Sequence record: OU509535.1
Strand: one strand, 5' to 3'
DNA length: 64,000 nt
In this document: piece after piece, positions 31,766 through 55,629 of the stretch
Position numbering within the stretch: the first letter of the stretch is position 1
Layout of the letters: every line of letters starts with the position of its first letter
The notes under the pieces: generated by a model
Told to the model about the DNA's origin: nothing
What the model saw: only the letters and a program-made list of their open reading frames with translations
Database searches by the model: none
Translations under genes and position numbers: made by a program

Positions 31766-32356
31766 ATGTATCACAATGAAACAATAGAGTTATTTGAAAT
31801 AATAAATTCATTTGAACCGGAGATGTTAAAAATACTACCCAGTTATGATGTACAACACAACGGACGTTCTTTCAGCTATATTTCAACATATGCAGAATCA
31901 GAACATCCAATGAAATACAACGAATTTACGGTTAAATGGGTAACAGAAAGGGAAGATGAAGTTGTACCAACTATTTCAGTTGGTTCTTCAACTTTAACAT
32001 CATTGACTCGTACTTACAATAATGTCAGTACTGATTTATTGAATACTTGTACAGTACTTGTATCAAGTGATTTATCCAGATTGATTTCAGTACAATGGGA
32101 AATGGGCTTGAATAGCAATATGATTTACCCACAGGCTATGATTAGTTCTACAATTATTAAAAAAACAACATCTGAAATGAAATTGATGAATGCGTTGTAT
32201 TTGCGAAATGAAAGTGTATTAATTAATGGTGTACTTTATGATTTAAATGCAAATGCAAATGCATTCACTGAAGATATTAGTGATGATAAATCACATTTTT
32301 CTATACTAAACGTCATTAATTTAAGGAACATTTTTAATGAATTACGATTGGCTTGA
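31766..32356 (+). CDS. hypothetical protein
   Basis: AGGTG RBS. Confidence 0.75.
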   Translation: MYHNETIELFEIINSFEPEMLKILPSYDVQHNGRSFSYISTYAESEHPMKYNEFTVKWVTEREDEVVPTISVGSSTLTSLTRTYNNVSTDLLNTCTVLVSSDLSRLISVQWEMGLNSNMIYPQAMISSTIIKKTTSEMKLMNALYLRNESVLINGVLYDLNANANAFTEDISDDKSHFSILNVINLRNIFNELRLA

Positions 32357-32882
32357 AACCCTTATTAACGAATCATGTAATGCACTAAAAGAATATGATA
32401 TTTCAGTGTTTTTCAATCCACTATTCAATGATCACAAATTTGAATCATTTGATATAGAAAAAAGAGATAATTTTATTATCTTAAAAAATGGTATTAGTCA
32501 GAAAGAAGTCGTGACATATAAAAAGAATTCAAGTCCTTATAATATTAGTACTGCGATAGTTGGTAATACTAATGTTTATAACAAAAATCCATTTCATGAT
32601 GAATTACCTGATTATCACAGCATTGATTATGTAAATTACACTTATTCATTTGTTTTCAGGCAAGATGGTTTTATCGGGTTTGATGTAAAGAGAAAAAACG
32701 AAACTTTATTGAATATTATTGTTGGAAATAGCGATATTTTGATATACAATGAAAATGGTTATAACTGGTACAACAAAGAAACATTTGAAGAATTTTCATT
32801 TCAAAATTCATTAATTGAACCAAGAAAAAATTTTGATTTATTTTATATTAATTCTGTACTTAAAAATTTTAAATTAGTTTAA
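32337..32882 (+). CDS. FQxS-motif paralog family protein
   Basis: C-terminal EEFSFQNSLIE. Confidence 0.7.
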   Translation: MNYDWLETLINESCNALKEYDISVFFNPLFNDHKFESFDIEKRDNFIILKNGISQKEVVTYKKNSSPYNISTAIVGNTNVYNKNPFHDELPDYHSIDYVNYTYSFVFRQDGFIGFDVKRKNETLLNIIVGNSDILIYNENGYNWYNKETFEEFSFQNSLIEPRKNFDLFYINSVLKNFKLV

Positions 32883-32892
32883 GGATAATAAA

Positions 32893-33255
32893 ATGTGGTA
32901 TATTATTAGTGTAGTAGTACTTTCTGTTTTGGTTGGTATTGTATTACTGAAAGGTGTAACGTATACAATGTCTAAAATAGACAAGTACCAGGAAAATTCA
33001 GTAATCGATTTGTTTATTGATTACCCAAAAAGCATCATTACTTTTCTGTTTGTTATGGTACTGATTGGTTTTTATATGGTATCTCATCAAATTGGAGAAA
33101 TGTACACTTGTGCCATCCGAAGTAGTTCACAGAATGTAGAAACCGAATATAGTTGGTATTTTGATAAATGTCGCTTCAAAAATAAAGATGGTGCATGGGT
33201 AGATATTGATCGTTTATTGGGTATGCCTGATGGCAAAGAACATGAACAACAATGA
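32893..33255 (+). CDS. membrane protein
   Basis: two TM helices. Confidence 0.75.
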   Translation: MWYIISVVVLSVLVGIVLLKGVTYTMSKIDKYQENSVIDLFIDYPKSIITFLFVMVLIGFYMVSHQIGEMYTCAIRSSSQNVETEYSWYFDKCRFKNKDGAWVDIDRLLGMPDGKEHEQQ

Positions 33256-33766
33256 ACATAAATTCTTCATAGAGCCAGAAGATGAAATAGACTATTTTGA
33301 TGCAATAGACAGTACTGAAGATGGATATACACATATCAATATATATAGTAAAGGTAAAACTAAATTAGGACGCGATTTATCTAATTTTAGTCCCTATAGT
33401 TTTACGCTTGAACCATATGGATGGTTTCCATCAGTAGAGTCATTTTATTTCTGGTTTTTAACTGGACAAAAACACCATGAGCTACGTAAGCTCTCTGGGG
33501 CGGCAGCTAAGGCTGCTGCGGAAAAGTATACCCATGATAGGCTTGAGATGACCGATGAGCGTCTTGGTGTGATACAGGCCGCTATTTGTGCCAAGATAGC
33601 ACAGAACCCCGACTTAGCAGAGCGTTTAAAGAAAAGTACATTAGCTTTTAAGCATTATTATTGCTATGGTACTAAAGTAATAAACGTGGAAGATGAGCAT
33701 GGGTGGTTTGTTCAAACAATCGAAGATATAAGGACTGCATTAAAAGAAGGAGATGAACATGAATAA
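33230..33766 (+). CDS. NADAR-family protein (T4 gp30.3-like)
   Basis: LSNFSPYSF, FPSVESF, LSGAAAK, KIAQNPDL, FKHY parallel gp30.3 LSNFAQWPF, FGGLEGF, LSGLAAQ, LKHS (recalled). Confidence 0.65.
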   Translation: MAKNMNNNEHKFFIEPEDEIDYFDAIDSTEDGYTHINIYSKGKTKLGRDLSNFSPYSFTLEPYGWFPSVESFYFWFLTGQKHHELRKLSGAAAKAAAEKYTHDRLEMTDERLGVIQAAICAKIAQNPDLAERLKKSTLAFKHYYCYGTKVINVEDEHGWFVQTIEDIRTALKEGDEHE

Positions 33767-33992
33767 TACACAGTTTGAATCATTTGATATAGAGAGTATA
33801 TTAAAACCAACTGATAACTGTACTGTACTTATGAATATGTACTGGATAGTCAAAGATGAAAAAGTCTTTAGATCATTACGAACTAAAGTATGGCAATGCA
33901 ATAAATTTGAGAGTGTAGTTAAACATGTAATCGAATCTTATCCTGGTTGTGAGGTTCGTTTTCTTGAATATGCTTATGTAAAGAAGGATTGA
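33753..33992 (+). CDS. hypothetical protein
   Basis: packed ORF with RBS. Confidence 0.7.
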   Translation: MNMNNTQFESFDIESILKPTDNCTVLMNMYWIVKDEKVFRSLRTKVWQCNKFESVVKHVIESYPGCEVRFLEYAYVKKD

Positions 33993-34435
33993 TTATGAAA
34001 TATTATATGGTAACGGAAGGTGATTCGAGTGGTATTCATTTTTTATGGTCTTATTATGAATTGCTTGACTGTTGCACCGTAGAAGATGCAGAAGATTTAT
34101 ACAGAGAAGAAAATGGATATTCACTGGATGCACCTTATGGATTGAGAATTTATAGTAAAGAAATTACAGAAAAAGAATATCATGATGGATTGCATTTTAA
34201 CGATTATTATGGTGTTAGAACGCTAATTACCGAATTGATGTTTAAAAATAACATTTTCCCACTAAAAAGTTGGGCTTTAATGTTTGCAAATCCAAAAAAA
34301 CCTGTTAGAATAGGGTTTCCTGGTTCACATCTAGTCTATCGTATGAATGATAAACGAGAGCTTAGCTACCAGTATGATTATGATTCACATAAGTTTGGTC
34401 TTCTACCAGCATTTAAAGGTTTGACAAATGAGTAA
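33989..34435 (+). CDS. hypothetical protein
   Basis: packed ORF. Confidence 0.7.
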   Translation: MIMKYYMVTEGDSSGIHFLWSYYELLDCCTVEDAEDLYREENGYSLDAPYGLRIYSKEITEKEYHDGLHFNDYYGVRTLITELMFKNNIFPLKSWALMFANPKKPVRIGFPGSHLVYRMNDKRELSYQYDYDSHKFGLLPAFKGLTNE

Positions 34436-34763
34436 AGATTCATTAGAATTTATTTTACGTTGTGATTGTGGTGAAAAATCAGATCATGTAATTCACATTG
34501 CACAGTACGATCTAGACGAAGAGTACGGTGATAATAAACTTGGCACTTGTTTAATCAGTGCTCGTTTAGAACCATGTAAAACATGGTATGAACGTATTTG
34601 GATTGGTATCAAATACATCTTTGGTCACAATAGTTATCAGTATATGGATACAATGGTTGATGTTGATATCCTACGTGAAGTAGTACAGCAGTTAAAAGAT
34701 GAACGTTCAGAAGAAGATAAAAAGGCTTCACGTGAAAAACGCTCAGAGGTTAAGGTTCTATGA
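34428..34763 (+). CDS. hypothetical protein
   Basis: packed ORF, CDC and WYERIWIGIKYIFG. Confidence 0.75.
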   Translation: MSKDSLEFILRCDCGEKSDHVIHIAQYDLDEEYGDNKLGTCLISARLEPCKTWYERIWIGIKYIFGHNSYQYMDTMVDVDILREVVQQLKDERSEEDKKASREKRSEVKVL

Positions 34764-34954
34764 GTGTGTTATTTGAAAAGAAATATTGTACTAAATGCTT
34801 GACAGCTTATACAATTCAGGGTATGATTTGTTGCTCAAACTGTCAAAGCACAGATGCTCAAACGTTTTTGGTTGATGATCGTTACACCGATTTAATTCAA
34901 TTCAAAGCGAATCGAAATTTAAAACATTTTAGTGCTTTACACGACAAAGATTGA
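34760..34954 (+). CDS. small Zn-ribbon protein
   Basis: CxxC...CxxC. Confidence 0.65.
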   Translation: MSVLFEKKYCTKCLTAYTIQGMICCSNCQSTDAQTFLVDDRYTDLIQFKANRNLKHFSALHDKD

Positions 34955-34999
34955 ATGCTATAATCATCTTAACTTAAACAAAAACAGGAATTACTTTAT

Positions 35000-35491
35000 A
35001 TGACTAACGTTAATACCAATTTAGTAACTGATATCAAAAAAGTTATTACTTCTCATCATTTCTTTGCACCAGAAAAACAACGAGTCATCTCTGATATCAA
35101 AGAAGATGAACTTAGTATTATTATTCGTTTTAAAGAACCTGGTGATGAAATTTCATCACAGTTCACTGTACTTCGTGGTAAATTCCGCGAAGAAGGCGTT
35201 GACAAGATCCCAGCTTACATTCTTTTTATTACACTTGGTAGTGTAATTAAGCTGGAAATTGATGAAAATCTGGAGCGTTCATATAAATTTATGCTTGCAC
35301 CAGTTACAGATGATGATAACGTTGAACTGGATTTCAAGAATGATTTCACTGAAGAAGAATTCTTTCAGCAAAGTACAATCCATGATTTCCGTTCAGTAAC
35401 TTATGAACACGTCGAACTTATCAAAGATATGATTGAACCAGTTACCAGTTACGAGAAATACCTCGATGGTCAAGCTGAAGGCAACGAATAA
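35000..35491 (+). CDS. FQxS-motif paralog family protein
   Basis: FTEEEFFQQSTIHDF. Confidence 0.8.
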   Translation: MTNVNTNLVTDIKKVITSHHFFAPEKQRVISDIKEDELSIIIRFKEPGDEISSQFTVLRGKFREEGVDKIPAYILFITLGSVIKLEIDENLERSYKFMLAPVTDDDNVELDFKNDFTEEEFFQQSTIHDFRSVTYEHVELIKDMIEPVTSYEKYLDGQAEGNE

Positions 35492-35541
35492 AAATAAATA
35501 ACCCACTTCGGTGGGTTATTTTCTATATAAGGATATAAATT

Positions 35542-36087
35542 ATGTTAAAAGAAATTCAAAAATTAACTAATTCAATTGTAGATTTTCTTAAAGATAAAAA
35601 TGGGTTTAGTACTGAAGTATCAAAACAGGGTGTTCAGCTAATAGTTAAAAATCCTAATGGTACTGAAACTTTGTATGATGTTTATGAATTGCTTTTATAT
35701 AAACTTAGTGCTAATAAACTAGGCGGTGATATTCAGTTAAATATTAATGATAGTACTGAGGGTAAGATTTTTGCAATTAACACGAATGTAAATTTTGATA
35801 TTCATTCTAAAATCCTCGAAATTAATAATTCATTTGATGATTTCAAACACGACACCATTCGTGGTGTTTTTGTTAGTACTCAATTGTCTGAAAGTACAAA
35901 TCCGTTTTCGGTACTAACCATGTATAAAAATGGTACATGGGTTCGTTACGATTTAACACTGTCGGAATTACTGTACGCTTGTGTAAATGGGTATAAATTA
36001 CAATTGAACGATTCAGGTTTTGTATACAATGAATTACGTGAATTGTGTGAACATGTAAAAAAAGAAATGAAACAAGAAGAAAAATAA
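35542..36087 (+). CDS. hypothetical protein
   Basis: AAGGA RBS. Confidence 0.75.
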   Translation: MLKEIQKLTNSIVDFLKDKNGFSTEVSKQGVQLIVKNPNGTETLYDVYELLLYKLSANKLGGDIQLNINDSTEGKIFAINTNVNFDIHSKILEINNSFDDFKHDTIRGVFVSTQLSESTNPFSVLTMYKNGTWVRYDLTLSELLYACVNGYKLQLNDSGFVYNELRELCEHVKKEMKQEEK

Positions 36088-36118
36088 AATATCCAAATAA
36101 TGAGAGGTAGTTCTCTGT

Positions 36119-36541
36119 ATGACATTACATGAAGTACTGAATAGTTTCTTTGAATTGAATATTTCAGAAATGAAAACCAAACAAAATAGACACCAACATA
36201 GTGTTTGGTATGATGCCCAACCACAACCGTTTTTAATCAATTTTAAAGAAACAGAAACATACACAATAATGAGATTTCATCATTTTGATGGTGAAAATAA
36301 TTACAGGGTATCATATGATGAAGGAACTGATCGACTGATTTACACAGTAATGGGTACAATTTCAACAACAATCACTATTAAGAACTTCTCTTCCTATAAA
36401 TCAGAAGATAATTTTTTTCAGGATTCACTGATTAACGATTACAATGATTTATCATTCGAAGATATTGACAAAATGATGAATATGTTCTATAATGTAAAAA
36501 ATACAAGTTTATCCCTATTTGGTGAAGATGATGAAATTTGA
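36119..36541 (+). CDS. FQxS-motif paralog family protein
   Basis: SEDNFFQDSLINDY. Confidence 0.8.
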   Translation: MTLHEVLNSFFELNISEMKTKQNRHQHSVWYDAQPQPFLINFKETETYTIMRFHHFDGENNYRVSYDEGTDRLIYTVMGTISTTITIKNFSSYKSEDNFFQDSLINDYNDLSFEDIDKMMNMFYNVKNTSLSLFGEDDEI

Positions 36542-36968
36542 TTTAGAAAAATTTCTGGATTTGGATTTAGATTCATTTTATATCAGAAAGTTTATTTTTA
36601 AACCACACACAAATGTGGTTGATTATGCTGTGATTGAACTACATGAATCAGACTATACAATTTGGTACGATGTTGATGATTGTATTCAACTAAAGGAATG
36701 TGATGAATGTAAAGGTTATGTTCTGTTGTATGACCTCAATACAAATGAAATTACATTAAAAACTTCACATTATGATGAATACGGTATTATAACAAGACGT
36801 GAATGTGTTGCATTTTCACATGATGATTACACAGAAGAATCATTTTTTATGATTAGTACCTTACATGATGTTGGGGAATTTACATTTGAAACTTTCGATA
36901 AATTTAATAAAATTTTGAAAAAGATTAAATCAATGATCAAGGAAATTGAAAATGAACAGTCCAAGTAA
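36519..36968 (+). CDS. FQxS-motif paralog family protein
   Basis: TEESFFMISTLHDV. Confidence 0.8.
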   Translation: MVKMMKFDLEKFLDLDLDSFYIRKFIFKPHTNVVDYAVIELHESDYTIWYDVDDCIQLKECDECKGYVLLYDLNTNEITLKTSHYDEYGIITRRECVAFSHDDYTEESFFMISTLHDVGEFTFETFDKFNKILKKIKSMIKEIENEQSK

Positions 36969-37365
36969 ATGTTATATTGTTATTCGTAATGATTTGGATA
37001 TGCCAGAAGGTAAATTTGGTGCACAAATCGGTCATGGCATCGACGCAGTATGGAAAGAGGTTTTGGTAGCCGGTACAATGGTGCGTGCTGCAAATATAGC
37101 CAATGAACAACCAAAAGAGCGTGATATCAAAATACAGGATGAAATTTCTAAATGGGTGAGTGACGGTAGTAGAAAGATTATTCTAAAAACAAAATCAGAA
37201 GACGAATTACTGAAAATTTATAAAAAGGTATTGTCTGAAGGTTGTATTTGTACTAAAATTTATGATTATGGATTTAATTTTTTTGATGGTTTAACTTTAA
37301 CTGGTATTGTTGTACATCCATGTTCAGAAGAAATTAAAACATTAAAACGAGTACGCTTATGGTAA
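36946..37365 (+). CDS. peptidyl-tRNA hydrolase, PTH2 family
   Basis: YIVIRNDLDMPEGKFGAQIGHG, KIILK..SEDELL, DYG, LKRVRLW. Confidence 0.8.
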   Translation: MKMNSPSKCYIVIRNDLDMPEGKFGAQIGHGIDAVWKEVLVAGTMVRAANIANEQPKERDIKIQDEISKWVSDGSRKIILKTKSEDELLKIYKKVLSEGCICTKIYDYGFNFFDGLTLTGIVVHPCSEEIKTLKRVRLW

Positions 37366-37733
37366 ATGAACATTTAAAAGAATTATGTTCTTTATGGAAA
37401 TCATCTGATGTAAGATTTGAACCTGTACCCAAAAATAAAGATAACTGGCATAATTCTATTGTTATGGGGACTGGTGGTTTTTTTCTTTTACCTATGGTAC
37501 TAAAAGATAAAAAAATAGGTATTGTTGTTTTATACAATGATCTTATATATTATTTTTTGTACGAAGATGAAATTCAGTACGTACATAATAATATGACACA
37601 TACATACAAAAGAGATACCACACATGAAGAACTATTCCAACTAAGTACTTTATACGATGGAGTAATTCAGTACGAAAACTTAATAGAAGTTTTTAACTTA
37701 TATGATTCCGTAATGGAGGTAATTGAAAGATGA
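37359..37733 (+). CDS. FQxS-motif paralog family protein
   Basis: THEELFQLSTLYDG. Confidence 0.8.
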   Translation: MVNEHLKELCSLWKSSDVRFEPVPKNKDNWHNSIVMGTGGFFLLPMVLKDKKIGIVVLYNDLIYYFLYEDEIQYVHNNMTHTYKRDTTHEELFQLSTLYDGVIQYENLIEVFNLYDSVMEVIER

Positions 37734-38071
37734 TGAGTCATTGTAAATTCTGGCTTCCTGTTATGGTTGTTCTGTTTATTATTTTTACAGTAGTAAACTA
37801 TAAAATCCACAATTCTATCCCAAGACAGCCTACAGCAGAAGAATTAGCTATTCATCAAAATAGTGGTTTATATGCTGAAGTACTCAATAAAATCAAAAAC
37901 AAATGTACTGGTATCAGTGATAATGAAAAGAATACATTTTATACATGTGAAGATGGTTCTAAAGTATCAGTGATTTACTGGAAACGTCAAGAAAGAACTG
38001 GGTATGTCACTCGTGATTTTGATAAAAATGGTAAATTAATTTCGATTTATGGACACCCAGATGATATCTAA
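37730..38071 (+). CDS. membrane-anchored hypothetical protein
   Basis: N-terminal TM. Confidence 0.7.
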   Translation: MMSHCKFWLPVMVVLFIIFTVVNYKIHNSIPRQPTAEELAIHQNSGLYAEVLNKIKNKCTGISDNEKNTFYTCEDGSKVSVIYWKRQERTGYVTRDFDKNGKLISIYGHPDDI

Positions 38072-38513
38072 AGAACAACATAAATTTTTATTCAAAATAT
38101 TGAATTCTTATAAAGTTAATAAGTTCAGTACTAAACACGTTCACAATCCAAAAATTGTTATTAGCACAAGGCGATATATAGGAAATAACAATTTTGAAAT
38201 ATACTTATATAAAGGAACTATTTCATTAGAAATTCAAAGATATGGTATTATTTTATTATTAATTGAGTATAATCCAATTTCTGACAACATGACGTTATTA
38301 TTCAATGATAATGAACATTGTTCTGAAATCGTTTATCGTATAAACGATGTGTCGGAAATTCTTGAAGAAGATGGTTATTTTCAACAAAGTCTTGTACAAA
38401 ATCTTCCATTGGAATATAATGATTTTTGCAAAATGATGGATGATATCACAACCATCAAAAATTCAATGCTGGAACGTTTTGAGTTAACTGAACAAGAGCA
38501 CGACAATGACTAA
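38049..38513 (+). CDS. FQxS-motif paralog family protein
   Basis: LEEDGYFQQSLVQN. Confidence 0.75.
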   Translation: MDTQMISKEQHKFLFKILNSYKVNKFSTKHVHNPKIVISTRRYIGNNNFEIYLYKGTISLEIQRYGIILLLIEYNPISDNMTLLFNDNEHCSEIVYRINDVSEILEEDGYFQQSLVQNLPLEYNDFCKMMDDITTIKNSMLERFELTEQEHDND

Positions 38514-38760: not shown

Positions 38761-38821
38761 AGAACCATTAGATCGTGATGATGATTTTTATGATGAACGT
38801 TATGGTGAATCGGAGGAATAA

Positions 38822-40558: not shown

Positions 40559-41029
40559 GTGGATTTTTTTCTATTTGAGATTAAATTAAACATGCATAAT
40601 GAAGAAATAATTCATTTTCTTAAATTTTATTTAAAATGTATGAATGCTGTTCAAAAATTAATGGAATGTGAAATGATTAATGATTTCAATGATCATTTTG
40701 GATATATAAGTACAGATTTATATCCCGTCCCTGTTCGTGCAAAATGGAATTATGATCAAGATGCATATGCAATGCAACTGGATTTTGATTTATTCGGACT
40801 TCCATCTAAATTTAATATAGGAACTATTTGTTTTGATAAAAATGATGGTTTGATTTTAATTTGTTATAACAATAAAACAGAAGTTGATTTAAAATACAGA
40901 GAATGGTTAACCGAAGAATCGTTTTTTCAGTCCTCGTTAATATATGATTTTGGTAGTACTGATTTACAGTACTGGAAAAAATGCATTGATTTATTTGAAA
41001 AGATTGAAGGAGTAATGACAGGTGTTTAA
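40559..41029 (+). CDS. FQxS-motif paralog family protein
   Basis: WLTEESFFQSSLIYDF; true start uncertain. Confidence 0.8.
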   Translation: MDFFLFEIKLNMHNEEIIHFLKFYLKCMNAVQKLMECEMINDFNDHFGYISTDLYPVPVRAKWNYDQDAYAMQLDFDLFGLPSKFNIGTICFDKNDGLILICYNNKTEVDLKYREWLTEESFFQSSLIYDFGSTDLQYWKKCIDLFEKIEGVMTGV

Positions 41030-41417
41030 AATAAAACTAATTTATACCACTGGTAATACATTCGAAACATGTGAAGTAGAAAGATTTATTAATTGCGAAT
41101 GGGATACAGAAGAGAAAGCTATTCATGAAATGAATAAAATCCGAGAGCACTGGATTTTCAATAAAAAAATTAGTTCTACTCGTGATAAAGACACAAAGAA
41201 GAAATTGGTATCACAAGCTATTATGCAATCATGGTATAAACCTGGTAATTCTGAATATACTATGTTGCTAGTTGATAATGATGGAAATTCTTTTGAAATG
41301 TATGCTGCATGGTTAGGGTATTTTGAAATTCTTCACAGTACTGAAGTAGTCAATGCAAACCAATTAGACAACTATATTGATTTCGATGAATTAAGATCAA
41401 ATATGGGATTGTGGTAA
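41022..41417 (+). CDS. hypothetical protein
   Basis: packed ORF. Confidence 0.7.
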   Translation: MFKIKLIYTTGNTFETCEVERFINCEWDTEEKAIHEMNKIREHWIFNKKISSTRDKDTKKKLVSQAIMQSWYKPGNSEYTMLLVDNDGNSFEMYAAWLGYFEILHSTEVVNANQLDNYIDFDELRSNMGLW

Positions 41418-41851
41418 TGGATGGTCCAACTGTACTAAAAATCCTTCGTAAATTTAAACACCCAATGTTGTTCGGACGTTGGAAATCGTTAAAAGAAAAT
41501 AAAAATACCGACGATCAAAAAAATATCAATTATAGATGGTATTGGGATTATTCAAAAGATTATGGTGATTCACTTTGTATAAAAATTAAATTCAATAATT
41601 ATAATAAATGGTCTAGAGATAAAAAATATATATATTCATATGATATTCACTTATCAAAGGAACATGTATTTATTTTTCATAGAAGTTACAACAAATTTTC
41701 ATTGAAACATGATGTACTATTTTCTATAAATGAATTATATGAAGATTTAGAAAGTGTATTATTTCAGCAATCATTATTGACTTCTACTGGTATGGTGAGT
41801 ACTCAAGAAATTGAAGTACTTAAAGAATTAAAAGATATGTATTTTCCATAA
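41411..41851 (+). CDS. FQxS-motif paralog family protein
   Basis: LESVLFQQSLLTS. Confidence 0.7.
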   Translation: MVMDGPTVLKILRKFKHPMLFGRWKSLKENKNTDDQKNINYRWYWDYSKDYGDSLCIKIKFNNYNKWSRDKKYIYSYDIHLSKEHVFIFHRSYNKFSLKHDVLFSINELYEDLESVLFQQSLLTSTGMVSTQEIEVLKELKDMYFP

Positions 41852-44691: not shown

Positions 44692-45521
<830 letters not shown>

Positions 45522-45525
<4 letters not shown>

Positions 45526-46392: not shown

Positions 46393-46471
46393 TATCAAAT
46401 CCAGCCACTACATATATGTAGTGGCTATTATTTTAAGTACATGTTTAAGTACATTACAAAGGTGAATTATC

Positions 46472-47200: not shown

Positions 47201-48099
<899 letters not shown>

Positions 48100-48728: not shown

Positions 48729-48804
48729 GCGAGGGACGCTACGCCTTAGTTTAGGGCTAAAATCGTAAGGATTGCGTACTAAACCGCCTTGAGAGTCCCA
48801 AGGC
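48729..48804 (+). ncRNA. candidate pseudoknotted small RNA
   Basis: gggac/gtccc, tacgc/gcgta, gcctt/aaggc, gtttag/ctaaac; GC-rich with no ORF. Confidence 0.45.
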
Positions 48805-48920
48805 AACTTTTAATTTAAATAAATTTGTACAAAACACAAAAAGGTGATATAATGATTCTATCTGAAGAAGATTGGGGTGTTTATCCCAAAGACGAATTTG
48901 ATGGATTTTAATAAAAAATC

Positions 48921-48950
48921 TTGAACAAAAACAAAATAATGTGATATAAT
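48921..48950 (+). promoter_or_regulatory. sigma70-type promoter
   Basis: TTGAAC-18-TATAAT, TGn. Confidence 0.7.
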
Positions 48951-49103
48951 ATTAGTACTGAATGAGGATAGGTGCAGTTGGTGAGATACCGCATGAGAAA
49001 TCATAGACACCGTAGAAAGCGAAGGGCTTGGTGAGCGACGGCAATAGACAAGCATAGTAGAGGCTTGAAGAACTCATTTAGTACATTTTAATTTAAGAAT
49101 TAA

Positions 49104-49191
49104 GGCCGTATGTCCAAATTGGTAAAGGAGACAGACTTAAAATCTGTTGGTGATATTCACCTTCTCGATTCGAGTTCGAGTGCGGCTACCA
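49104..49191 (+). tRNA. tRNA-Leu(UAA)
   Basis: cloverleaf, long variable arm, acaga-CT-TAA-AA-tctgt, encoded CCA. Confidence 0.95.
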
Positions 49192-49220
49192 AATTTATAG
49201 TACTTCATTAGGTAAACAAT

Positions 49221-49544
49221 ATGTGTACTGAAGCAAGAAGATATGTTTATATTTTGGTTCGCAAAGATTTAGAACTAAAGGATATTATTGTTCAAACTGC
49301 TCATGCTTCATATGAAAGTGCAAAAGAATTCAAAAATAATGCTGATAGAACATCTATTATAGTTTTAGAAGTCAAGGACTTATACAAACTAAATGATGCT
49401 AAAAGTTATTTAAATTCTAATGGTATTAATTGGACTGTGTATACTGAAAAATCTTTAGGATTTGGAGAAACTGCTATCAGTACTGAAGCACTCAATAACG
49501 AACAACGAAAAATTATGCGTAAGTTCCAATTATTGAAAATATAA
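49221..49544 (+). CDS. second PTH2-fold protein
   Basis: YILVRKDL..VQTAHA, IIVLEV, TAIST, FQLL. Confidence 0.7.
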   Translation: MCTEARRYVYILVRKDLELKDIIVQTAHASYESAKEFKNNADRTSIIVLEVKDLYKLNDAKSYLNSNGINWTVYTEKSLGFGETAISTEALNNEQRKIMRKFQLLKI

Positions 49545-49557
49545 ATATAATAACAAA

Positions 49558-49633
<76 letters not shown>

Positions 49634-49638
49634 AATTC

Positions 49639-49734
49639 AACAGGTAGTAACGCTCTTAGGTGTACATTAATATAGGAATAAGGGTTAACAGTACTGTACA
49701 CAAACGAGTAACCCCGAAAGACCCGAAACCTGTT
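49639..49734 (+). ncRNA. candidate pseudoknotted RNA
   Basis: aacaggt/acctgtt, gtgtaca/tgtacac, gggtta/taaccc. Confidence 0.5.
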
Positions 49735-49744
49735 AAAGTTTTAC

Positions 49745-49794
49745 GGATGATTATAAATCTGAATTGACAGAAACAGCTAAAACTGTTATTATCC
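49745..49794 (+). ncRNA. 50-nt tRNA-like repeat, copy 1
   Basis: 7-bp closing stem plus two hairpins; covaries with copies 2 and 3. Confidence 0.7.
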
Positions 49795-49802
49795 TATTTT
49801 AT

Positions 49803-49990
49803 TCCACAATCAGACGTATATGGTGTAAGTTACGTCGATGAAATCCAGAACAAGATCTCTGGTACTCTAGGAAGTGGTGAATGTTAACCTAGACGGGTTT
49901 GTTAATTGGACGATAAGCAATTAATACTTGACTAGCAGGTTTAAACTAGAGGTGACTGTCCTTCACTATACTGGAAAACCGGATGGATTT
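49803..49990 (+). ncRNA. candidate multi-hairpin RNA
   Basis: gacgta/tacgtc, ctagg/cctag, ttaattg/caattaa, aaatcca/tggattt; no ORF. Confidence 0.4.
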
Positions 49991-50005
49991 TTAATTAAAA
50001 AAGTG

Positions 50006-50034
50006 TTGAACAAAATGTTCAATAATGATATAAT
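50006..50034 (+). promoter_or_regulatory. promoter with TTGAAC-N5-GTTCAA inverted repeat
   Basis: TTGAAC-17-TATAAT. Confidence 0.8.
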
Positions 50035-50125
50035 AATTATCAATGTAAGGCGTGGAACAATGTTTACAGAAGTTACTTAGTAGCCTGTACGCCCCACGTC
50101 AAGGTAGCCGAAAGGCAAGTTTAAT

Positions 50126-50175
50126 GGGTGGTTATAAATCTGAATTGACAGAGACTATTAAAACAGTCACCATCC
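50126..50175 (+). ncRNA. 50-nt tRNA-like repeat, copy 2
   Basis: gggtggt/accatcc closing stem; same layout as copy 1. Confidence 0.7.
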
Positions 50176-50363
50176 AAATTTTAATTTAATAGTTTAGTAT
50201 GAATAAAAAACAAATACATAAACATTATGATGAAATTGCAGTGAAGGTTTTTCGTGGTGAATTAGGTTATAAACCATCTGTTAAATCTAAATATTCAAAA
50301 TCTTCTTCAATAAAGTTCAATCATAAAATAGAGTTTAAATAATACTGGACAAGAATACATAAA

Positions 50364-50873
50364 ATGAATATCACTAATGTAAAAGATTTTTTAGAATATT
50401 TTATTAAGAATACTCGTGCCCGTGATGAATTAGAAAAAAATGGATTCGTTGATGGTTACGATTGCACTAATTTCTTTTATACTATTGATAAACATGAATA
50501 TTATGTCGATGCAACTTTAAGTGATGATCCATATTATATAAAAGATGGGTATTGCATTGGATTTACGTTCGAAGATAAATCACTAGATGCACCAATAAAC
50601 TTTTATACATTATATTATAATAAAAAAGATAATATTTTGAAATTAGGATTTACTTGGGATGATGAAGAAGATGTTGTATTCAATTGTAATACATGGTTAG
50701 AACATGATTCATTCTTTCAAAGTACATTAATTCATGACTTTATGACAACAGATTTAGAGTACTGGAAAAACTGCATAGAATTACTTAATGTAATTTATAA
50801 TGAACAAGTTAAAAAATTTGACAATAGTTTACACAATGATGACATTTATAATAAAAACTTTATGGGACGATAA
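50364..50873 (+). CDS. FQxS-motif paralog family protein
   Basis: WLEHDSFFQSTLIHDF. Confidence 0.8.
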   Translation: MNITNVKDFLEYFIKNTRARDELEKNGFVDGYDCTNFFYTIDKHEYYVDATLSDDPYYIKDGYCIGFTFEDKSLDAPINFYTLYYNKKDNILKLGFTWDDEEDVVFNCNTWLEHDSFFQSTLIHDFMTTDLEYWKNCIELLNVIYNEQVKKFDNSLHNDDIYNKNFMGR

Positions 50874-50951
50874 TCGTAGGACGGGTCAGCATTTGGTAGT
50901 ATGTTCGGCTGAATAAAGTATAAACGTCATCACCAAATTTAAAAAAAAGTG

Positions 50952-50980
50952 TTGAACAAAATCATCAATACTGATATAAT
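50952..50980 (+). promoter_or_regulatory. sigma70-type promoter
   Basis: TTGAAC-17-TATAAT, TGn. Confidence 0.75.
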
Positions 50981-51007
50981 AAAAGAAATTTTTTAAGGTC
51001 AAATGAT

Positions 51008-51217
51008 ATGTTGACAGATACTAATAAAAAGATGTTTATTCAAATAGGTTTTTTTACTCTTCAAGATATCATTGATAAGGCACATGAAAAATGGCCTAAT
51101 GTAAAACTTGAAGATATTCATATTGAAATAGAATGTATAGAAGAAAATAATACTTCATATCATGGTTTGAAAAACGTAAAAGTTTGCACTGAATATTACG
51201 TATTAAGTATTGAATAA
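51008..51217 (+). CDS. hypothetical protein
   Basis: AAGGT RBS, follows promoter. Confidence 0.65.
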   Translation: MLTDTNKKMFIQIGFFTLQDIIDKAHEKWPNVKLEDIHIEIECIEENNTSYHGLKNVKVCTEYYVLSIE

Positions 51218-51244
51218 TTCAGTACTATATAATTGACTTACTAC

Positions 51245-51318
51245 GTCCCCTTAGTTCAGTTGGATAGAACAACTGCCTTCTAAGCAGTAGGTCACTGGTT
51301 CGAGTCCAGTAGGGGATA
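51245..51318 (+). tRNA. tRNA-Arg(UCU)
   Basis: cloverleaf, actgc-CT-TCT-AA-gcagt; CCA not directly encoded. Confidence 0.93.
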
Positions 51319-51373
51319 TACCATACAATATGGGAATAGTTAGAAGATATTCCCAATTTTAATTTAAAAAGTG

Positions 51374-51402
51374 TTGAACAAAAAGTTCAATAATGATATA
51401 AT
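51374..51402 (+). promoter_or_regulatory. promoter with TTGAAC-N5-GTTCAA inverted repeat
   Basis: TTGAAC-17-TATAAT. Confidence 0.8.
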
Positions 51403-51465
51403 GGTATTATAAAAGGTTGTAATACTTAATATTAACTTTTAAGAAGATAATTAGTATCATACACA

Positions 51466-51557
<92 letters not shown>

Positions 51558-51578
51558 TAAAATTCAATTAAAAAAGTG

Positions 51579-51607
51579 TTGAACAAAAAGTTCAATGCTG
51601 ATATAAT
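51579..51607 (+). promoter_or_regulatory. promoter with TTGAAC-N5-GTTCAA inverted repeat
   Basis: TTGAAC-17-TATAAT. Confidence 0.8.
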
Positions 51608-51615
51608 AAAAGAAT

Positions 51616-51706
<91 letters not shown>

Positions 51707-51714
51707 GATTTTAT

Positions 51715-51764
51715 GGATAGTTATAAAGTTGAATTAACAGCGACACTTAAAATTGTCACTATCC
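51715..51764 (+). ncRNA. 50-nt tRNA-like repeat, copy 3
   Basis: ggatagt/actatcc closing stem; same layout as copies 1 and 2. Confidence 0.7.
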
Positions 51765-51785
51765 AAATTTTAATTTAAATAGTAC

Positions 51786-51814
51786 TTGACAAAAATGTTC
51801 AGTACTTATATAAT
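51786..51814 (+). promoter_or_regulatory. sigma70 promoter for the intron-containing tRNA
   Basis: TTGACA-17-TATAAT with AGTACT at 51781 and 51801. Confidence 0.8.
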
Positions 51815-51829
51815 GTAGAAAAGAACATC

Positions 51830-52130
51830 GGGACTGTAGCTCAGGGGTGAGAGCAACCGACTCATGGTTATCGTGACTTTCACAAGCAATTGTGATTGAA
51901 AAACTGGATGAATTCAGGGAAACCTTAACACGTAATGGTGATGGCAATCCTGAGCCAAGCCCAATAAGCGTATTGGGAAGGTGCAGAGACTAGGTGGTTC
52001 AGCACGATCTTGCTGTGTAATACACCAATAGCGTCCGGCATCCTTATGGGATGATGATATAGTCCGTGCCTTTACGAAAGTATTGGATAAACGAATCGGC
52101 AGGTCGTTGGTTCAAAACCAACCAGTCCCA
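51830..52130 (+). tRNA. tRNA-CAU (probably Ile2, possibly elongator Met) split by a group I intron; exons 51830-51865 and 52094-52130
   Basis: joined exons give a cloverleaf with loop CT-CAT-AA; lacks initiator features. Confidence 0.88.
51866..52093 (+). mobile_element. group I intron (IC3, tRNA-intron type), 228 nt, no internal ORF
   Basis: P AATTCAGGGAAAC, Q AATCCTGAGCC, R GGTGCAGAGACT, S GATATAGTCC; U-G at the 5' splice site (tcat/gtga), P10 ggtt/aatc, terminal G. Confidence 0.92.
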
Positions 52131-52148
52131 CTTATTAAAGAAAATACA

Positions 52149-52574
52149 ATGGAATGGCGTAAATTATATCTAAAGGAATTAGATATCTATATAAATGTAT
52201 CAGATGAAGGTAATCTTCAAACATTCGATAGATATGTAACACAAACATCAATAAAAGGCAATGAATATACTAGACTAGTTGAAGGAAAAGAACTTTGTCC
52301 ATACATTAATGGTAAAGCTGGATATAGTCAAATTGGTATTCATTCTGGTGGTATACAGAAAAAATACTATGTTCATCGTCTTGTGTGGATAGCTTTCAAT
52401 GGTGAAATACCAGAAGGTTATGAAATTGATCATGATGATAATGATAAAAGTAATAATGCATTGAGCAATTTAAATCTTAAAACAAGAAAAGAAAATATGG
52501 ATAAAATGCTCATACATAGACCGTATATAAAAGAAAATTTCATTAAGAACTTTGCTCAAAAGAAAAACAAATAA
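52149..52574 (+). CDS. freestanding HNH homing endonuclease (NUMOD4-like + HNH)
   Basis: VSDEGN, VHRLVWIAFNGEIPEGYEIDHDDNDKSNNALSNL. Confidence 0.92.
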   Translation: MEWRKLYLKELDIYINVSDEGNLQTFDRYVTQTSIKGNEYTRLVEGKELCPYINGKAGYSQIGIHSGGIQKKYYVHRLVWIAFNGEIPEGYEIDHDDNDKSNNALSNLNLKTRKENMDKMLIHRPYIKENFIKNFAQKKNK

Positions 52575-52575
52575 T

Positions 52576-52648
52576 GACTCTGTAGCACAATCGGTGGTGC
52601 GATTGACTGTTAATCAATTGGTTGGGGATTCGAGTTCCTCCAGAGTCG
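52576..52648 (+). tRNA. tRNA-Asn(GUU)
   Basis: cloverleaf, attga-CT-GTT-AA-tcaat; no encoded CCA. Confidence 0.9.
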
Positions 52649-52667
52649 CTTAACAAACCAAAGAATT

Positions 52668-52814
52668 GTACCTAAATAACGAGTATATGGATTCTCTATG
52701 ATTGTCCCTGTATGAGTTAGAGAGATTATTCATAAGAAGTCGAGTGTATAGATTCTCAAAGAAATGATTGTTTATACATGAGTTATCTTAAAACGAATAT
52801 CTCAAGGTACACCA
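52668..52814 (+). ncRNA. candidate ~147-nt ACCA-ended stable RNA
   Basis: gtacct/aggtac closing stem followed by ACCA; no ORF. Confidence 0.4.
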
Positions 52815-52821
52815 AACAATT

Positions 52822-52870
52822 GACTCTGTAGTTCAGTTGGTAGATCTTATATAGTTACCAACCAGAGTCG
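52822..52870 (+). pseudogene. internally deleted tRNA-Asn-like element (mini-tRNA)
   Basis: acceptor gactctg/cagagtc+G identical to tRNA-Asn; no anticodon arm; gttggta/taccaac hairpin. Confidence 0.7.
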
Positions 52871-52878
52871 CTTACAAT

Positions 52879-52943
52879 GGAAGGTGGTAATACATCAGTA
52901 TTACCTTTTAAGACCGAAGATATGAGTATCTTCCCTTCCACCA
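52879..52943 (+). ncRNA. 65-nt three-way-junction RNA ending in ACCA
   Basis: ggaagg/ccttcc+ACCA, ggtaatac/gtattacc, gaagata/tatcttc. Confidence 0.6.
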
Positions 52944-53034
52944 CACATTGTACTCTTCTCCCGTAAGGAGAATGACAAAAAAACTATCCGAAAGATAGAA
53001 AGCCTGAAATAACAGGGTGCAATTAAATTACAAT

Positions 53035-53099
53035 GGGACATGTAGACGATAACACCAATATACTTCCAAAGGGTTGTGAGGTGCGTAATATTCCCACCA
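53035..53099 (+). pseudogene. degenerate tRNA-like element ending in ACCA
   Basis: ggga/tccc+ACCA; internal arms poorly paired. Confidence 0.35.
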
Positions 53100-53101
53100 A
53101 T

Positions 53102-53231
53102 TTTGGACAAATCGTACTGAATTAGTACTGTAATAATAGACACTTATTGCTGTAAACTGGAATGCGGTATACATTCCTTCAGATACAGAGTGTGACAATA
53201 CGATGTTAAAGGTATCCTTTGACTGTCCAAA
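53102..53231 (+). ncRNA. candidate 130-nt multibranch RNA
   Basis: tttggaca/tgtccaaa closing; nested acact/agtgt, ctgta/tacag, ggaatg/cattcc. Confidence 0.5.
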
Positions 53232-53255
53232 TTAATTTAAATGGAGTACTGAATA

Positions 53256-53456
53256 ATGTCCAAATATGTTAATCGTCAAAAACGAAAAGCACGTACTAAG
53301 GACGAAATTCTACAGTTGATACAAAAAAATCAAAAAGATGTAGTTATTGAAGAATATATTTTTCAGTACGGTAATCAACAATCAATGGTACAAGAAAGTA
53401 ATGGTAAGTATCATTCTGAGCATTACGATCTCATTAAACGAATTCTTTTGAAATAA
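53256..53456 (+). CDS. hypothetical protein
   Basis: GGAG RBS. Confidence 0.65.
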   Translation: MSKYVNRQKRKARTKDEILQLIQKNQKDVVIEEYIFQYGNQQSMVQESNGKYHSEHYDLIKRILLK

Positions 53457-53611
53457 ACAATAATACTCATCATCTAATATCAGTACTGATGCGTATCAGC
53501 AGGTGGCTTGATGGGCAGTACTGACAGGATACATCGTTCTCCGGTGGCGGGTTCGGTGGATATACGTAAAGTCGTATTGGGTATACCAAATATAATAATA
53601 AAAATATGTAA

Positions 53612-53687
53612 TAATGTGATAGCTCAAATAGGTAGAGCGGGAGGCCAAAGTGCTGACTGGTTTGTGAGTTCGATTCTCACCCATTAT
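53612..53687 (+). pseudogene. tRNA pseudogene
   Basis: intact D arm (gctc/gagc) and T arm (gtgag-TTCGATT-ctcac); decayed acceptor and anticodon arms. Confidence 0.7.
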
Positions 53688-53752
53688 TAATAAAATTGTA
53701 AGCTACCCTGTTATTTGGGTAGCTTTTTCTTTTTATATAACAAGAGATTATT

Positions 53753-54169
53753 ATGAGTAAATTAACTTTACTGAATATTTTACAAGAATGCTATGAAAAA
53801 CTTGAAAATTCCAATCCAAGTGTCATATTCAACTCATCATTTGATAATTATTCTACTATAAATTATAGAGTAAAAATTTTAGTATATAATCACTTTGATT
53901 TATCATCATTGAATGAATGTAGTAACATTTACTTGCACATTAGTGATTATGATGATGTGGGTGAATATACTATGTCGATTGATATTTACAAAGGATATTT
54001 TTATTATAAAAATAAAAAATTTGACAATTTTGAAAATTTATTCCCATTGACTGAAGATACAATGTTTCAGTACTCAACACTTTATGACACATCATCCTTG
54101 ACAATGGATGAGTTAAATTTTATAATGTCTATTAGTTTGGATATTCCAATTTATGAAGCAGCATTATAA
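53753..54169 (+). CDS. FQxS-motif paralog family protein
   Basis: LTEDTMFQYSTLYDT. Confidence 0.8.
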   Translation: MSKLTLLNILQECYEKLENSNPSVIFNSSFDNYSTINYRVKILVYNHFDLSSLNECSNIYLHISDYDDVGEYTMSIDIYKGYFYYKNKKFDNFENLFPLTEDTMFQYSTLYDTSSLTMDELNFIMSISLDIPIYEAAL

Positions 54170-54186
54170 AATCTAGGAGCATTTTT

Positions 54187-54345
54187 ATGAAAATTAAGTG
54201 TTGTGTATGTGATTGTGAAATTGATGAAAAGCATGTATATGGCGAATGGGATGATTACTGCTCTGATTGCTGGGAATCTGAAGGACGTGATGCAGAACGA
54301 TGGGAAGATGAGAGCGAGTGGGAGTGGGATGAGGATGAAGAATAA
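54187..54345 (+). CDS. 52-aa acidic Cys-rich microprotein (not in ORF track)
   Basis: GGAG RBS; MKIKCCVCDCEIDEKHVYGEWDDYCSDCWESEGRDAERWEDESEWEWDEDEE. Confidence 0.7.
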   Translation: MKIKCCVCDCEIDEKHVYGEWDDYCSDCWESEGRDAERWEDESEWEWDEDEE

Positions 54346-54441
54346 ACGTATGTTTAAAGTACTGTTTCTTCATGCGTTTTAATTTATAGAGGCTGATTCA
54401 TTGAATCGGCCATTTTCTTTGTTAAAAAAAGAGATAAAAAT

Positions 54442-54849
54442 ATGAAAAAATTTCTTTCAAAAGAACACGAAGAAAATATTCTTAATGCATTGAGTGTATT
54501 TCCAGAGAGTGTTATAAGTAATAATAAGAATTCTACATATTATTATGGTAAAGGTAATTGGTTTTATTTTAGCGACAGTTCATATATGTGTGTATTAAAT
54601 CTATGTACTGAAGAATATTCTTATTGTTTAAGGATCGATCCTCGTTATAAATTAATCCTACTATGCGAAAAGAATGATGAATTTTATGAAAGTGAGATAG
54701 ATGATACCGATTCATATATTAGTAATTTTTATCTCGAAGAAGATGTTTATTTTATGGATAGTACTGTGAATGAAATTACCATTCCTTTTAGTATAATGAA
54801 ACGTTCATATGAATTTCTAAAATACAGCAGAGAAAAATTTCATGACTGA
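54442..54849 (+). CDS. FQxS-motif paralog family protein
   Basis: LEEDVYFMDSTVNE. Confidence 0.75.
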   Translation: MKKFLSKEHEENILNALSVFPESVISNNKNSTYYYGKGNWFYFSDSSYMCVLNLCTEEYSYCLRIDPRYKLILLCEKNDEFYESEIDDTDSYISNFYLEEDVYFMDSTVNEITIPFSIMKRSYEFLKYSREKFHD

Positions 54850-55213
54850 TATAAATGAAGTTATAGAGCATTTTTATAATTGGGTACTAACGGATCCAAT
54901 AAAAACTGGATTAATTGAAAAATATAACTGCTCTATGTATTCTTATTGTTCAAATAAAGCTACGATGTATAGTAAGGATGTTGATAATTATTTACTAATC
55001 ACTGACGATGTAGTTTATGATGTATTTGACAATGAAATTGTCATTGATGGCAGTGATGTTGATATTGTAAAATTACATGATATGGATTTCTCATGTACTG
55101 AATCATCGGCGTTTCAATTAAGCACATTATATGATTTCCGATGCAGTACTGAAAGTATTGTATTATTATTGAAAATAGTACAAATTTTAAGAAAAAAGAG
55201 AATGGTATTATAA
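54842..55213 (+). CDS. FQxS-motif paralog family protein
   Basis: TESSAFQLSTLYDF. Confidence 0.8.
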   Translation: MTDINEVIEHFYNWVLTDPIKTGLIEKYNCSMYSYCSNKATMYSKDVDNYLLITDDVVYDVFDNEIVIDGSDVDIVKLHDMDFSCTESSAFQLSTLYDFRCSTESIVLLLKIVQILRKKRMVL

Positions 55214-55629
55214 TGGTGGAATTTAATGTTCAAGATTTTTATGATTTTGTAATGAAAGCCGAAAAGAATAATCGTACATATATTAAAACAATTGGGGATA
55301 ATATACATGAACACTTCTGTTATTCTTTAACGGAGGGAATGTCTGCATTTACAAATTCAACTATGGATAATGTATTATATAATTTATTAATGCATAATTG
55401 TCAGTATGTATTTGATATTTACAGTGATCAAATAATTTATAAAATTATATTTTTTGATAAAAAACAAATTGAAAATACAATTAATTTGGATTGTTATGAT
55501 TCTGAATCAAAAGAAGGATTTGCTTTTCAGTTATCAGTTTCATATGATTTCCCATTTAGTACTGAAGATTATATTTTAATGTTAAAGATTGTTGATAAAT
55601 TAAGACTAAACGAAAGGAATTTCAAATGA
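55213..55629 (+). CDS. FQxS-motif paralog family protein
   Basis: KEGFAFQLSVSYDF. Confidence 0.8.
   Translation: MVEFNVQDFYDFVMKAEKNNRTYIKTIGDNIHEHFCYSLTEGMSAFTNSTMDNVLYNLLMHNCQYVFDIYSDQIIYKIIFFDKKQIENTINLDCYDSESKEGFAFQLSVSYDFPFSTEDYILMLKIVDKLRLNERNFK

Follow-up and report, generated by a model that had tools for sequence, protein, structure and literature searches.

Large DNA viruses carry lineage-specific expansions of small folds, such as the poxvirus Bcl-2-like proteins and the herpesvirus US22/SUKH proteins. Families of paralogs are also known in general from jumbo phages: phiKZ has a set of head/inner-body paralogs with a shared C-terminal region (gp92-97, 153, 162 and 163; PF12699), several of which are individually dispensable, nearly 10% of the RaK2 products were reported to be paralogues in the RaK2 paper, and 22 paralogous open reading frames (ORFs) were listed in the CBB paper. 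Here we describe a family of small proteins united by a motif close to their C-terminus, of which 15 are encoded in a stretch of 64,000 nucleotides from sequence record OU509535.1 (the window; coordinates are those of the window unless record positions are specified). The size of this family, its unifying motif and its predicted fold are newly described, no description of the family having been found in the literature or libraries searched.

The window is 100% identical to the final 64 kb of OU509535.1, a circular assembly of 347,546 bp named "Klebsiella pneumoniae phage" that represents a Klebsiella jumbo phage of the RaK2/K64-1 type. Its identity to Klebsiella phages K64-1 and RaK2 (genus Alcyoneusvirus) is 97.6%. 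The sequence is AT-rich (~31% G+C) and coding is nearly all on the + strand. Replication and nucleotide-metabolism genes are found 5′ of the family region, which is a run of small ORFs broken up by six tRNA genes. All 15 ORFs proposed as paralogs in a first-pass annotation of the sequence are present at the starts given there, with lengths of 123 to 181 aa, and the peptides quoted from them were read correctly. Five of those starts are, however, GTG or TTG codons of the longest ORF; the annotated K64-1/RaK2 orthologues of these five members start at an ATG located 2-11 codons downstream. The members are listed below with the position of the motif and, where given, the E-value obtained with a C-terminal hidden Markov model (HMM) built without the member in question (leave-one-out), or other features of the protein (pI, isoelectric point).

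32337-32882, + strand: family member of 181 aa, the most divergent; motif at nt 32784-32822; leave-one-out rank 2, E 0.16, and iterated HMM E 1.3e-8; RaK2 ORF177
35000-35491, + strand: family member of 163 aa; motif at nt 35348-35386; leave-one-out E 4e-12; positional orthologue in phage 121Q with 48% identity; RaK2 ORF184
36119-36541, + strand: family member of 140 aa; motif at nt 36401-36439; modelled with AlphaFold2; RaK2 ORF186
36519-36968, + strand: family member of 149 aa from TTG (ATG at 36528); motif at nt 36831-36869
37359-37733, + strand: family member of 124 aa; motif at nt 37620-37658; leave-one-out E 4e-8; RaK2 ORF189
38049-38513, + strand: family member of 154 aa; motif at nt 38364-38402; leave-one-out E 3e-6; RaK2 ORF191
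40559-41029, + strand: family member of 156 aa from GTG (ATG at 40592); motif at nt 40910-40948; leave-one-out E 1e-10; nearest paralog 50364 (phmmer E 6e-16); RaK2 ORF196
41411-41851, + strand: family member of 146 aa from GTG (ATG at 41417), basic (pI 9.0); motif at nt 41747-41785; leave-one-out E 2e-3; RaK2 ORF198
47201-47611, + strand: family member of 136 aa from TTG (ATG at 47213); degenerate motif at nt 47477-47515; leave-one-out rank 1, E 0.014, and iterated HMM E 1.3e-9; RaK2 ORF213
47608-48099, + strand: family member of 163 aa from GTG (ATG at 47620), basic (pI 9.6); motif at nt 47908-47946
50364-50873, + strand: family member of 169 aa; motif at nt 50700-50738, a one-residue register variant; leave-one-out E 2e-9; most variable member relative to K64-1 and RaK2 (90-93.5% nt identity, indels)
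53753-54169, + strand: family member of 138 aa; motif at nt 54050-54088; leave-one-out E 4e-5; RaK2 ORF223
54442-54849, + strand: family member of 135 aa; motif at nt 54736-54774; leave-one-out E 3e-5; RaK2 ORF226
54842-55213, + strand: family member of 123 aa, the shortest; motif at nt 55097-55135; modelled with AlphaFold2
55213-55629, + strand: family member of 138 aa; motif at nt 55510-55548; leave-one-out E 2e-8

A loose pattern of the motif core matches 14 of the 15 members and one unrelated ORF among the 225 ORFs of at least 50 aa; the remaining member, 50364, has the register variant. Shuffling of the residues of each protein left 3.6 ± 1.9 ORFs with the pattern (maximum of 10 in 500 shuffles) compared to the 15 observed. 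The motif is best described from the 48 copies found in the complete genome (see below). Its Phe is invariant (48/48) and is followed by Gln (45/48), by Ser two positions past the Gln (43/48), and then by Thr or Leu (47/48) and Val, Leu or Ile (44/48). Acidic residues occupy the positions four (44/48) and three (43/48) before the Phe, Thr or Ser is found five positions before it (28/48), and Asp or Asn seven positions after it (31/48). The conserved Ser is encoded by both TCN and AGY codons and the conserved Gln by both its codons, showing that selection acts on the protein and not on the DNA. Conservation of a DNA element (a recombination or regulatory site) was rejected on these grounds.

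The members are recognized by models built without them, as expected for a single family: with leave-one-out HMMs of the C-terminal region, 14 of the 15 omitted members ranked first (E 4e-12 to 0.014) among ~190 ORFs. The same procedure gave no signal with the N-terminal parts (ranks 6-210), nor did an HMM from a global alignment of these parts. The N-terminal parts of 70 family proteins (the 15 and 55 relatives) fall into 34 phmmer groups without links between them, and hhalign comparison of N-terminal subfamily profiles reached at most 35% probability. When full-length subfamily profiles are compared, most pairs align only across their last 35-70 columns; the groups of 36119 and 36519 form the only pair alignable over the full length (96%). 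At the sequence level, the first-pass view of paralogs that have in common a C-terminal module alone, with the motif preceding a helix, is thus borne out: the invariant Phe is positioned 27-58 residues from the C-terminus in the window members and a long helix follows in both structural models (see below). An undescribed paralogous family that combines a constant element with a strongly diversified remainder is therefore real and significant.

No further members were found in the window, but the initial count of about 15, correct for the window, is too small for the phage. Scanning the remaining source genome piecewise with iteration of the C-terminal HMM raised the family to 48 members, 33 of them outside the window: a dense block of 27 at record positions 51-81 kb and six scattered copies. 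A few additional candidates in the genome were matched by the pattern only. The family represents ~9% of the genes, taking the 534-561 genes reported for such phages. The second block (OU509535.1 record 51,000-81,500) is denser than the first, its members are mostly larger (130-212 aa), and it features a Tyr-rich variant of the motif. Nucleotide-level matches to this block were found in Klebsiella phages only, and all orthologues are annotated as hypothetical.

Among 1.84 billion representative proteins, a profile search retrieved only 53 clusters at E-values up to 1e-3; these proteins are 81-222 aa long and all but one have the motif ~35 residues from their end. Orthologues identified by tblastn are confined to jumbo phages that infect Klebsiella, Escherichia, Salmonella or Erwinia, to which structural matches add relatives infecting Yersinia, Cronobacter and Pectobacterium. 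The motif was also searched in DNA as two degenerate patterns, which were found only in viral contigs of 345-378 kb, with no true match in 185,579 prokaryotic species (one genome each). Matches in two prokaryote metagenome-assembled genomes were discarded as chance occurrences: they have the wrong residues, no family-like ORF and no HMM match. The family is restricted to one clade, the enterobacterial jumbo phages of 345-380 kb. Searches of Pfam (20 members, E up to 1), NCBIfam and PDB sequences with family proteins gave no match, and the family profile found nothing below E 2 among PDB sequences. PHROGs contains the same proteins without recording them as one family: the 15 are spread over at least 19 groups of "unknown function" (phrog_17453, 23322, 21500, 24510, 27549 and 14 others), cross-linked by their C-terminal 40 residues, and each window member strongly matches its own PHROG.

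Monomer structures were predicted with AlphaFold2 for 36119 (model m6605d19bbe61, using a 69-sequence family alignment) and for 54842 (m0ebcb20a07ec), which belongs to a different N-terminal group. The 36119 model has a predicted local distance difference test score (pLDDT) of 92.8 and a predicted template modelling score (pTM) of 0.85. It is composed of a helix (residues 3-11), seven consecutive strands (19-88), a short helix that bears the motif (96-103) and a long helix (113-138). The 54842 model (pLDDT 82.2, pTM 0.82) shows the same order of elements: a helix (4-16), six to seven strands, the motif helix (86-96) and a last helix (103-122). Comparison of the 36119 model with predicted viral structures yielded full-length matches to paralogs at 15-23% identity and template modelling (TM) scores of 0.67-0.80, namely RaK2 proteins of 146 and 159 aa, one Yersinia phage protein and one Cronobacter phage protein. 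The two RaK2 proteins, assigned as orthologues of 36519 and 47608 by protein length and consecutive accession numbers, superpose with TM 0.74 over 146 columns and TM 0.77 over 136 columns, respectively, at 15-18% identity. In the case of 47608, hhalign aligns only the C-terminal 35 columns while the fold match spans 136. The matches of the 54842 model (TM 0.4-0.6) are again paralogs of this phage group. No significant match to the 36119 model was found in the PDB with Foldseek (best E 0.31).

According to these models, the family has one compact fold made of helix A, six to seven antiparallel strands, short helix B and long helix C, in which the motif corresponds to helix B and the loop following it. 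The strands are predicted to have diverged past sequence recognition while the fold was kept. The first-pass annotation had interpreted the proteins as a variable head attached to a constant tail. The models show no separable parts, only single rigid domains, and paralogs with unrelated N-termini superpose over their full length (TM 0.74-0.80), which also counters a modular design. We conclude that the "head" is most probably the diverged sheet of the same domain and not a separate module. The proposal was to be abandoned if the structures revealed one conserved fold with the motif as mere buried core; the models and the full-length superpositions give the first half of that outcome, a single fold. 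As to the motif, the 36119 model places its Ser/Thr before the acidic pair at the N-terminal end of helix B, the aromatic pair and the Gln inside the helix, and the hydrophobic residues and Asp in the loop that follows. A helix N-cap is suggested by the Thr/Ser with its two succeeding acidic residues, and an anchor of the helical layer onto the sheet by the invariant Phe and the hydrophobic positions after it. The conserved polar Gln, Ser and Asp would be compatible with a functional surface. A short recognition sequence, such as a plant-virus protease site, a bacterial sliding-clamp-binding peptide or a degradation tag, is disfavoured by the folded setting of the motif and by the variability of the residue next to the conserved Gln on its C-terminal side.

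Neighbouring members overlap by a few bases. Closest paralogs include adjacent genes, as is the case of the tandem duplicates 54842 and 55213 (phmmer E 3e-8), indicating that the family genes arose through tandem duplication. The pooled ratio of nonsynonymous to synonymous substitution rates (dN/dS) relative to K64-1 and RaK2 reaches 0.30-0.33 in the family and 0.12-0.13 in 26 neighbouring genes, so that purifying selection on the family is ~2.5 times weaker than on its neighbours. Within the family the C-terminal module has the lower ratio (0.23-0.26, compared to 0.32-0.37 in the N-terminal part). Member 55213 has no synonymous and 8-11 nonsynonymous differences to K64-1 and RaK2. This is not significant alone, and positive selection on single genes was dropped as an explanation. 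In Escherichia phage 121Q, a syntenic locus of 40 kb contains 14 members whose relative positions are the same. Positional orthologues of eight window members are found in it, with identities of 25-33% (with the exception of 35000, see list) and a median near 28%, and six window members have no match there. The median is near 46% for non-family genes of the same stretch, and identities of the upstream replication genes are 50-83%. The synteny of individual paralogs is thus kept between Alcyoneusvirus and Asteriusvirus. Together, dN/dS and 121Q synteny indicate that the family genes are functional and individually retained, and that they evolve faster than their surroundings.

Near-consensus σ70 promoters are a signature of early transcription by the host polymerase in T4-type phages. 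Between 31 and 57 kb of the window, 12 sequences matching the σ70 consensus in at least 11 of 12 positions were found on the coding strand, five of them perfect, versus one on the opposite strand and 1.6 ± 1.4 in shuffled sequences. Five promoter matches are located 17-42 nt upstream of gene starts, including those of members 35000 and 36519. Those most relevant to the family are:

34936-34964, + strand: σ70-like promoter, 11/12 with an extended −10 TG, 36 nt upstream of member 35000
36465-36493, + strand: σ70-like promoter, 12/12 with a 17-nt spacer, 26 nt upstream of member 36519
54098-54126, + strand: σ70-like promoter, 12/12, upstream of the array 54442-55629

The family genes are organized in co-oriented arrays behind these predicted host σ70 promoters. 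The equivalent region of small genes was proposed to contain early genes in the CBB paper. Across the whole window, sites matching at least 11 of 12 positions number 18 on the + and 2 on the − strand (3.8 expected), and perfect 12/12 sequences on the + strand are found at seven positions (28040, 36465, 42409, 45720, 51786, 54098 and 58098). None of the RaK2, K64-1 and 121Q orthologues is labelled "virion structural protein", though genes interspersed with them are; these labels derive from liquid chromatography-tandem mass spectrometry of gel slices of purified RaK2 particles. Thirteen of the 15 members are acidic (pI 4.2-5.1) and two are basic. Membrane or secreted proteins were rejected because a hydrophobic segment was sought and found in no member; the members are small, soluble, mostly acidic single-domain proteins.

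Our preferred reading, to which we give a probability of roughly 0.5, is that the family is an early-expressed, cytoplasmic and clade-specific library built on one scaffold with diversified surfaces, for which interaction with the host is the most likely role. A host-interaction role, part of the first-pass proposal, is judged to be the most plausible reading. The modular adaptor logic attached to it is not supported. The role is suggested by analogy with the lineage-specific expansions of large viruses and with the acidic, multi-ligand architecture of p32 (see below). The proteins would act early in the cytoplasm in host takeover or counter-defence, the helices holding the scaffold together and the diversified sheet surface of each paralog binding a different target. 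The acidic p32-like architecture suggests that basic, nucleic-acid-binding proteins might be among the ligands.

Several points weigh against this reading. The host-interaction function is argued by analogy. The promoters are matches to a consensus sequence, not transcription data, and mass spectrometry of virion gel slices can miss low-copy proteins. With two basic members, an "acidic decoy" cannot apply to all. Confidence in the 54842 model is only moderate at residues 30-50 and low at 38-45, and its superposition on the 36119 model is modest (TM ~0.4). Finally, the conserved polar Gln, Ser and Asp/Asn exceed what a simple core needs and leave room for a shared functional site.

This last point bears on an alternative that we find unlikely, a library of hub-docking adaptors built on the one domain: helix B and its loop would bind a common partner, for example a phage or host protease, chaperone or polymerase, and the variable sheet would bring targets to it. 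It would account for a short segment that is extremely conserved, polar Gln, Ser and Asp/Asn included, in an otherwise hypervariable family, and for the lower dN/dS of the C-terminal module (0.23-0.26 against 0.32-0.37). In the predicted structure there is no separate docking domain, as the helix bearing the motif is built into one rigid domain, and the Thr/Ser with the acidic pair, the Phe and the hydrophobic positions are what a structural helix needs. As for the hub, the first-pass annotation had named a ClpS-like adaptor, an HslV-like peptidase and GroES. A ClpS-like ORF exists in the window (11587-12126; PF02617, E 2.5e-5), a point in favour of docking, and so does a Cpn10/GroES-like ORF (22501-22833, + strand; E 4e-4, just under the Pfam cut-off), but none of the ORFs scanned was identified as an HslV-like peptidase. 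No result connects the ClpS-like or the Cpn10-like gene with the family, nor is any candidate hub tied to it. ClpS is moreover known to recognize N-terminal residues, not internal helices. In K64-1 the ClpS-like gene is labelled "ATP-dependent protease", and the Cpn10/GroES-like ORF has the labels "head morphogenesis" or chaperonin in relatives. PMC12802967, where yeast Mam33, a protein with the same order of elements, is reported in connection with a Lon-protease specificity factor, provides a lead only.

We regard as equally improbable that the paralogs act on the phage itself as chaperones, assembly factors or regulators, for instance of tail-fibre or spike proteins. The stable maintenance of positional orthologues across genera fits fixed phage clients, purifying selection on the members agrees with it, and p32-type proteins are described as chaperone-like multi-ligand binders. 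The genes are, however, found in promoter-rich regions of small genes, far from the RaK2 structural clusters, they diverge faster than neighbouring phage genes, and 48 copies far exceed the known fibre and spike genes.

A somewhat less probable reading, doubtful at present, is that the roughly 50 paralogs are a library of single-domain adaptors or decoys in which the invariant surface of helix B and its loop provides a common docking or oligomerization site and each hypervariable sheet face captures a different host protein. That site might serve one phage or host machine or allow assembly of mixed p32-like rings from different paralogs. If true, this library would be a phage-encoded combinatorial system that neutralizes or reroutes many host factors at once.

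It is very unlikely that the family represents internal proteins packaged in the virion and injected, with the C-terminal segment being a capsid-targeting or processing signal, as in the phiKZ PF12699 proteins and the T4 internal proteins. A jumbo-phage set of numerous paralogs sharing a constant segment follows the same logic, and there is a superficial resemblance between Glu-directed prohead-protease sites and the acidic pair preceding the Phe, which is a lead only. The virion labels described above nevertheless fall on interspersed genes and on no orthologue, there is no match to PF12699 or to any other Pfam family, the residue two before the first acidic position is variable so that no conserved protease site borders the constant segment, and in the models this segment is a helix within a folded domain. 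Least probable of all are redundant or decaying duplicates without individual function that pad the jumbo-phage genome, as the very high copy number, the dN/dS elevated relative to neighbours and the members absent or unrecognizable in 121Q might suggest, since dN/dS of 0.3 is well under 1, none of the 15 reading frames is disrupted, fold and motif persist at identities of 15-25%, and the synteny of individual paralogs is maintained.

Other features were noted in and around the family region. The tRNA cluster (49104-52649, + strand) encodes Leu-taa, Gly-tcc, Arg-tct, Ser-gct, Ser-tga and Asn-gtt; member 50364 and an ORF at 52083-52574 are found inside it, and an HNH endonuclease is annotated in K64-1 and RaK2 near this position. 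A peptidyl-tRNA hydrolase of the PTH2 (archaeal/eukaryotic) type is encoded among the family genes (36946-37365, + strand; E 9e-16), without counterpart in the syntenic 121Q locus. The ORF at 32893-33255 (+ strand) has a K64-1 orthologue labelled "WWE domain-containing protein", the window protein having no Pfam match at E up to 0.01. Relative to K64-1 and RaK2, no gene of the region has diverged more than a non-family ORF of 277 aa (44692-45525, + strand): its nt identity is ~93%, with 29-33 synonymous and 26-27 nonsynonymous differences, and its identity to the counterpart in 121Q is just 29%. Between 31000 and 50900, terminator-like hairpins are enriched about threefold (15 versus 5.4 ± 2.2 in shuffled sequences), and a palindromic hairpin at 46402-46427 reads on both strands. 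Further upstream, an IF3-like translation initiation factor with both IF3 domains (11062-11571, + strand) adjoins the ClpS-like gene, which is also on the + strand, and an ORF of 500 aa (15751-17253, + strand), labelled as a hef-like homing endonuclease in K64-1, separates the genes of both topoisomerase II subunits and is missing from the same site in 121Q.

About one in eleven genes of the RaK2-type jumbo phages, which are used and studied as therapeutic candidates against Klebsiella and E. coli, belongs to one unrecognized family. Merging at least 19 "unknown" PHROGs into one predicted fold with a diagnostic motif would simplify the annotation of several hundred hypothetical proteins and yields defined candidates for factors of early host takeover or counter-defence. 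Since the family has no significant relative among solved structures, any structure determined by experiment would be new. The near-invariant segment of 13 residues next to a sheet diverged beyond recognition offers a clean case of a kept scaffold with diversifying binding surfaces.

A known protein architecture that resembles the predicted fold is that of p32 (gC1qR/C1QBP/Mam33). Its element order, as described in PMC8924301, is an N-terminal helix, seven consecutive antiparallel strands and two C-terminal helices, which is the order found in the 36119 model; the 54842 model shows six to seven strands. Both are small and acidic, p32 is a multi-ligand binder, and chains of p32/C1QBP and its Leishmania homologue recur among the PDB matches of the 36119 model. 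The p32 proteins assemble as a homotrimeric doughnut. The family differs from p32 in having no Pfam MAM33 or PDB p32 sequence match and in Foldseek comparisons to 1p32, 3rpx, 6szw and 1yqf that are not significant (E 0.46-1.5, TM 0.24-0.35). Within the searches made, no equivalent of the family motif was found in p32. The likeness thus appears to be one of topology only, and membership in the MAM33 family is not supported by the models. The phiKZ paralogs share with the present family a jumbo-phage host genome and a common C-terminal region, but they are packaged in the virion and processed by a protease, while the present proteins have no virion annotation and no PF12699 match and are ~5 times more numerous. 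The F-box and BTB libraries, of which the first-pass annotation was reminded, also combine many paralogs with a constant element and a diversified remainder; they have separable docking and target-binding domains and a known hub, in contrast to the single domain predicted here. The poxvirus Bcl-2-like and herpesvirus US22-SUKH expansions differ in their folds and hosts, and the family has no match to SUKH/SMI1_KNR4 or any other Pfam entry. Nevertheless, they display the same combination of a fold that is kept, sequence similarity that is lost and genes arranged in tandem arrays, and they have roles in host interaction, a function that by analogy the present family may share.

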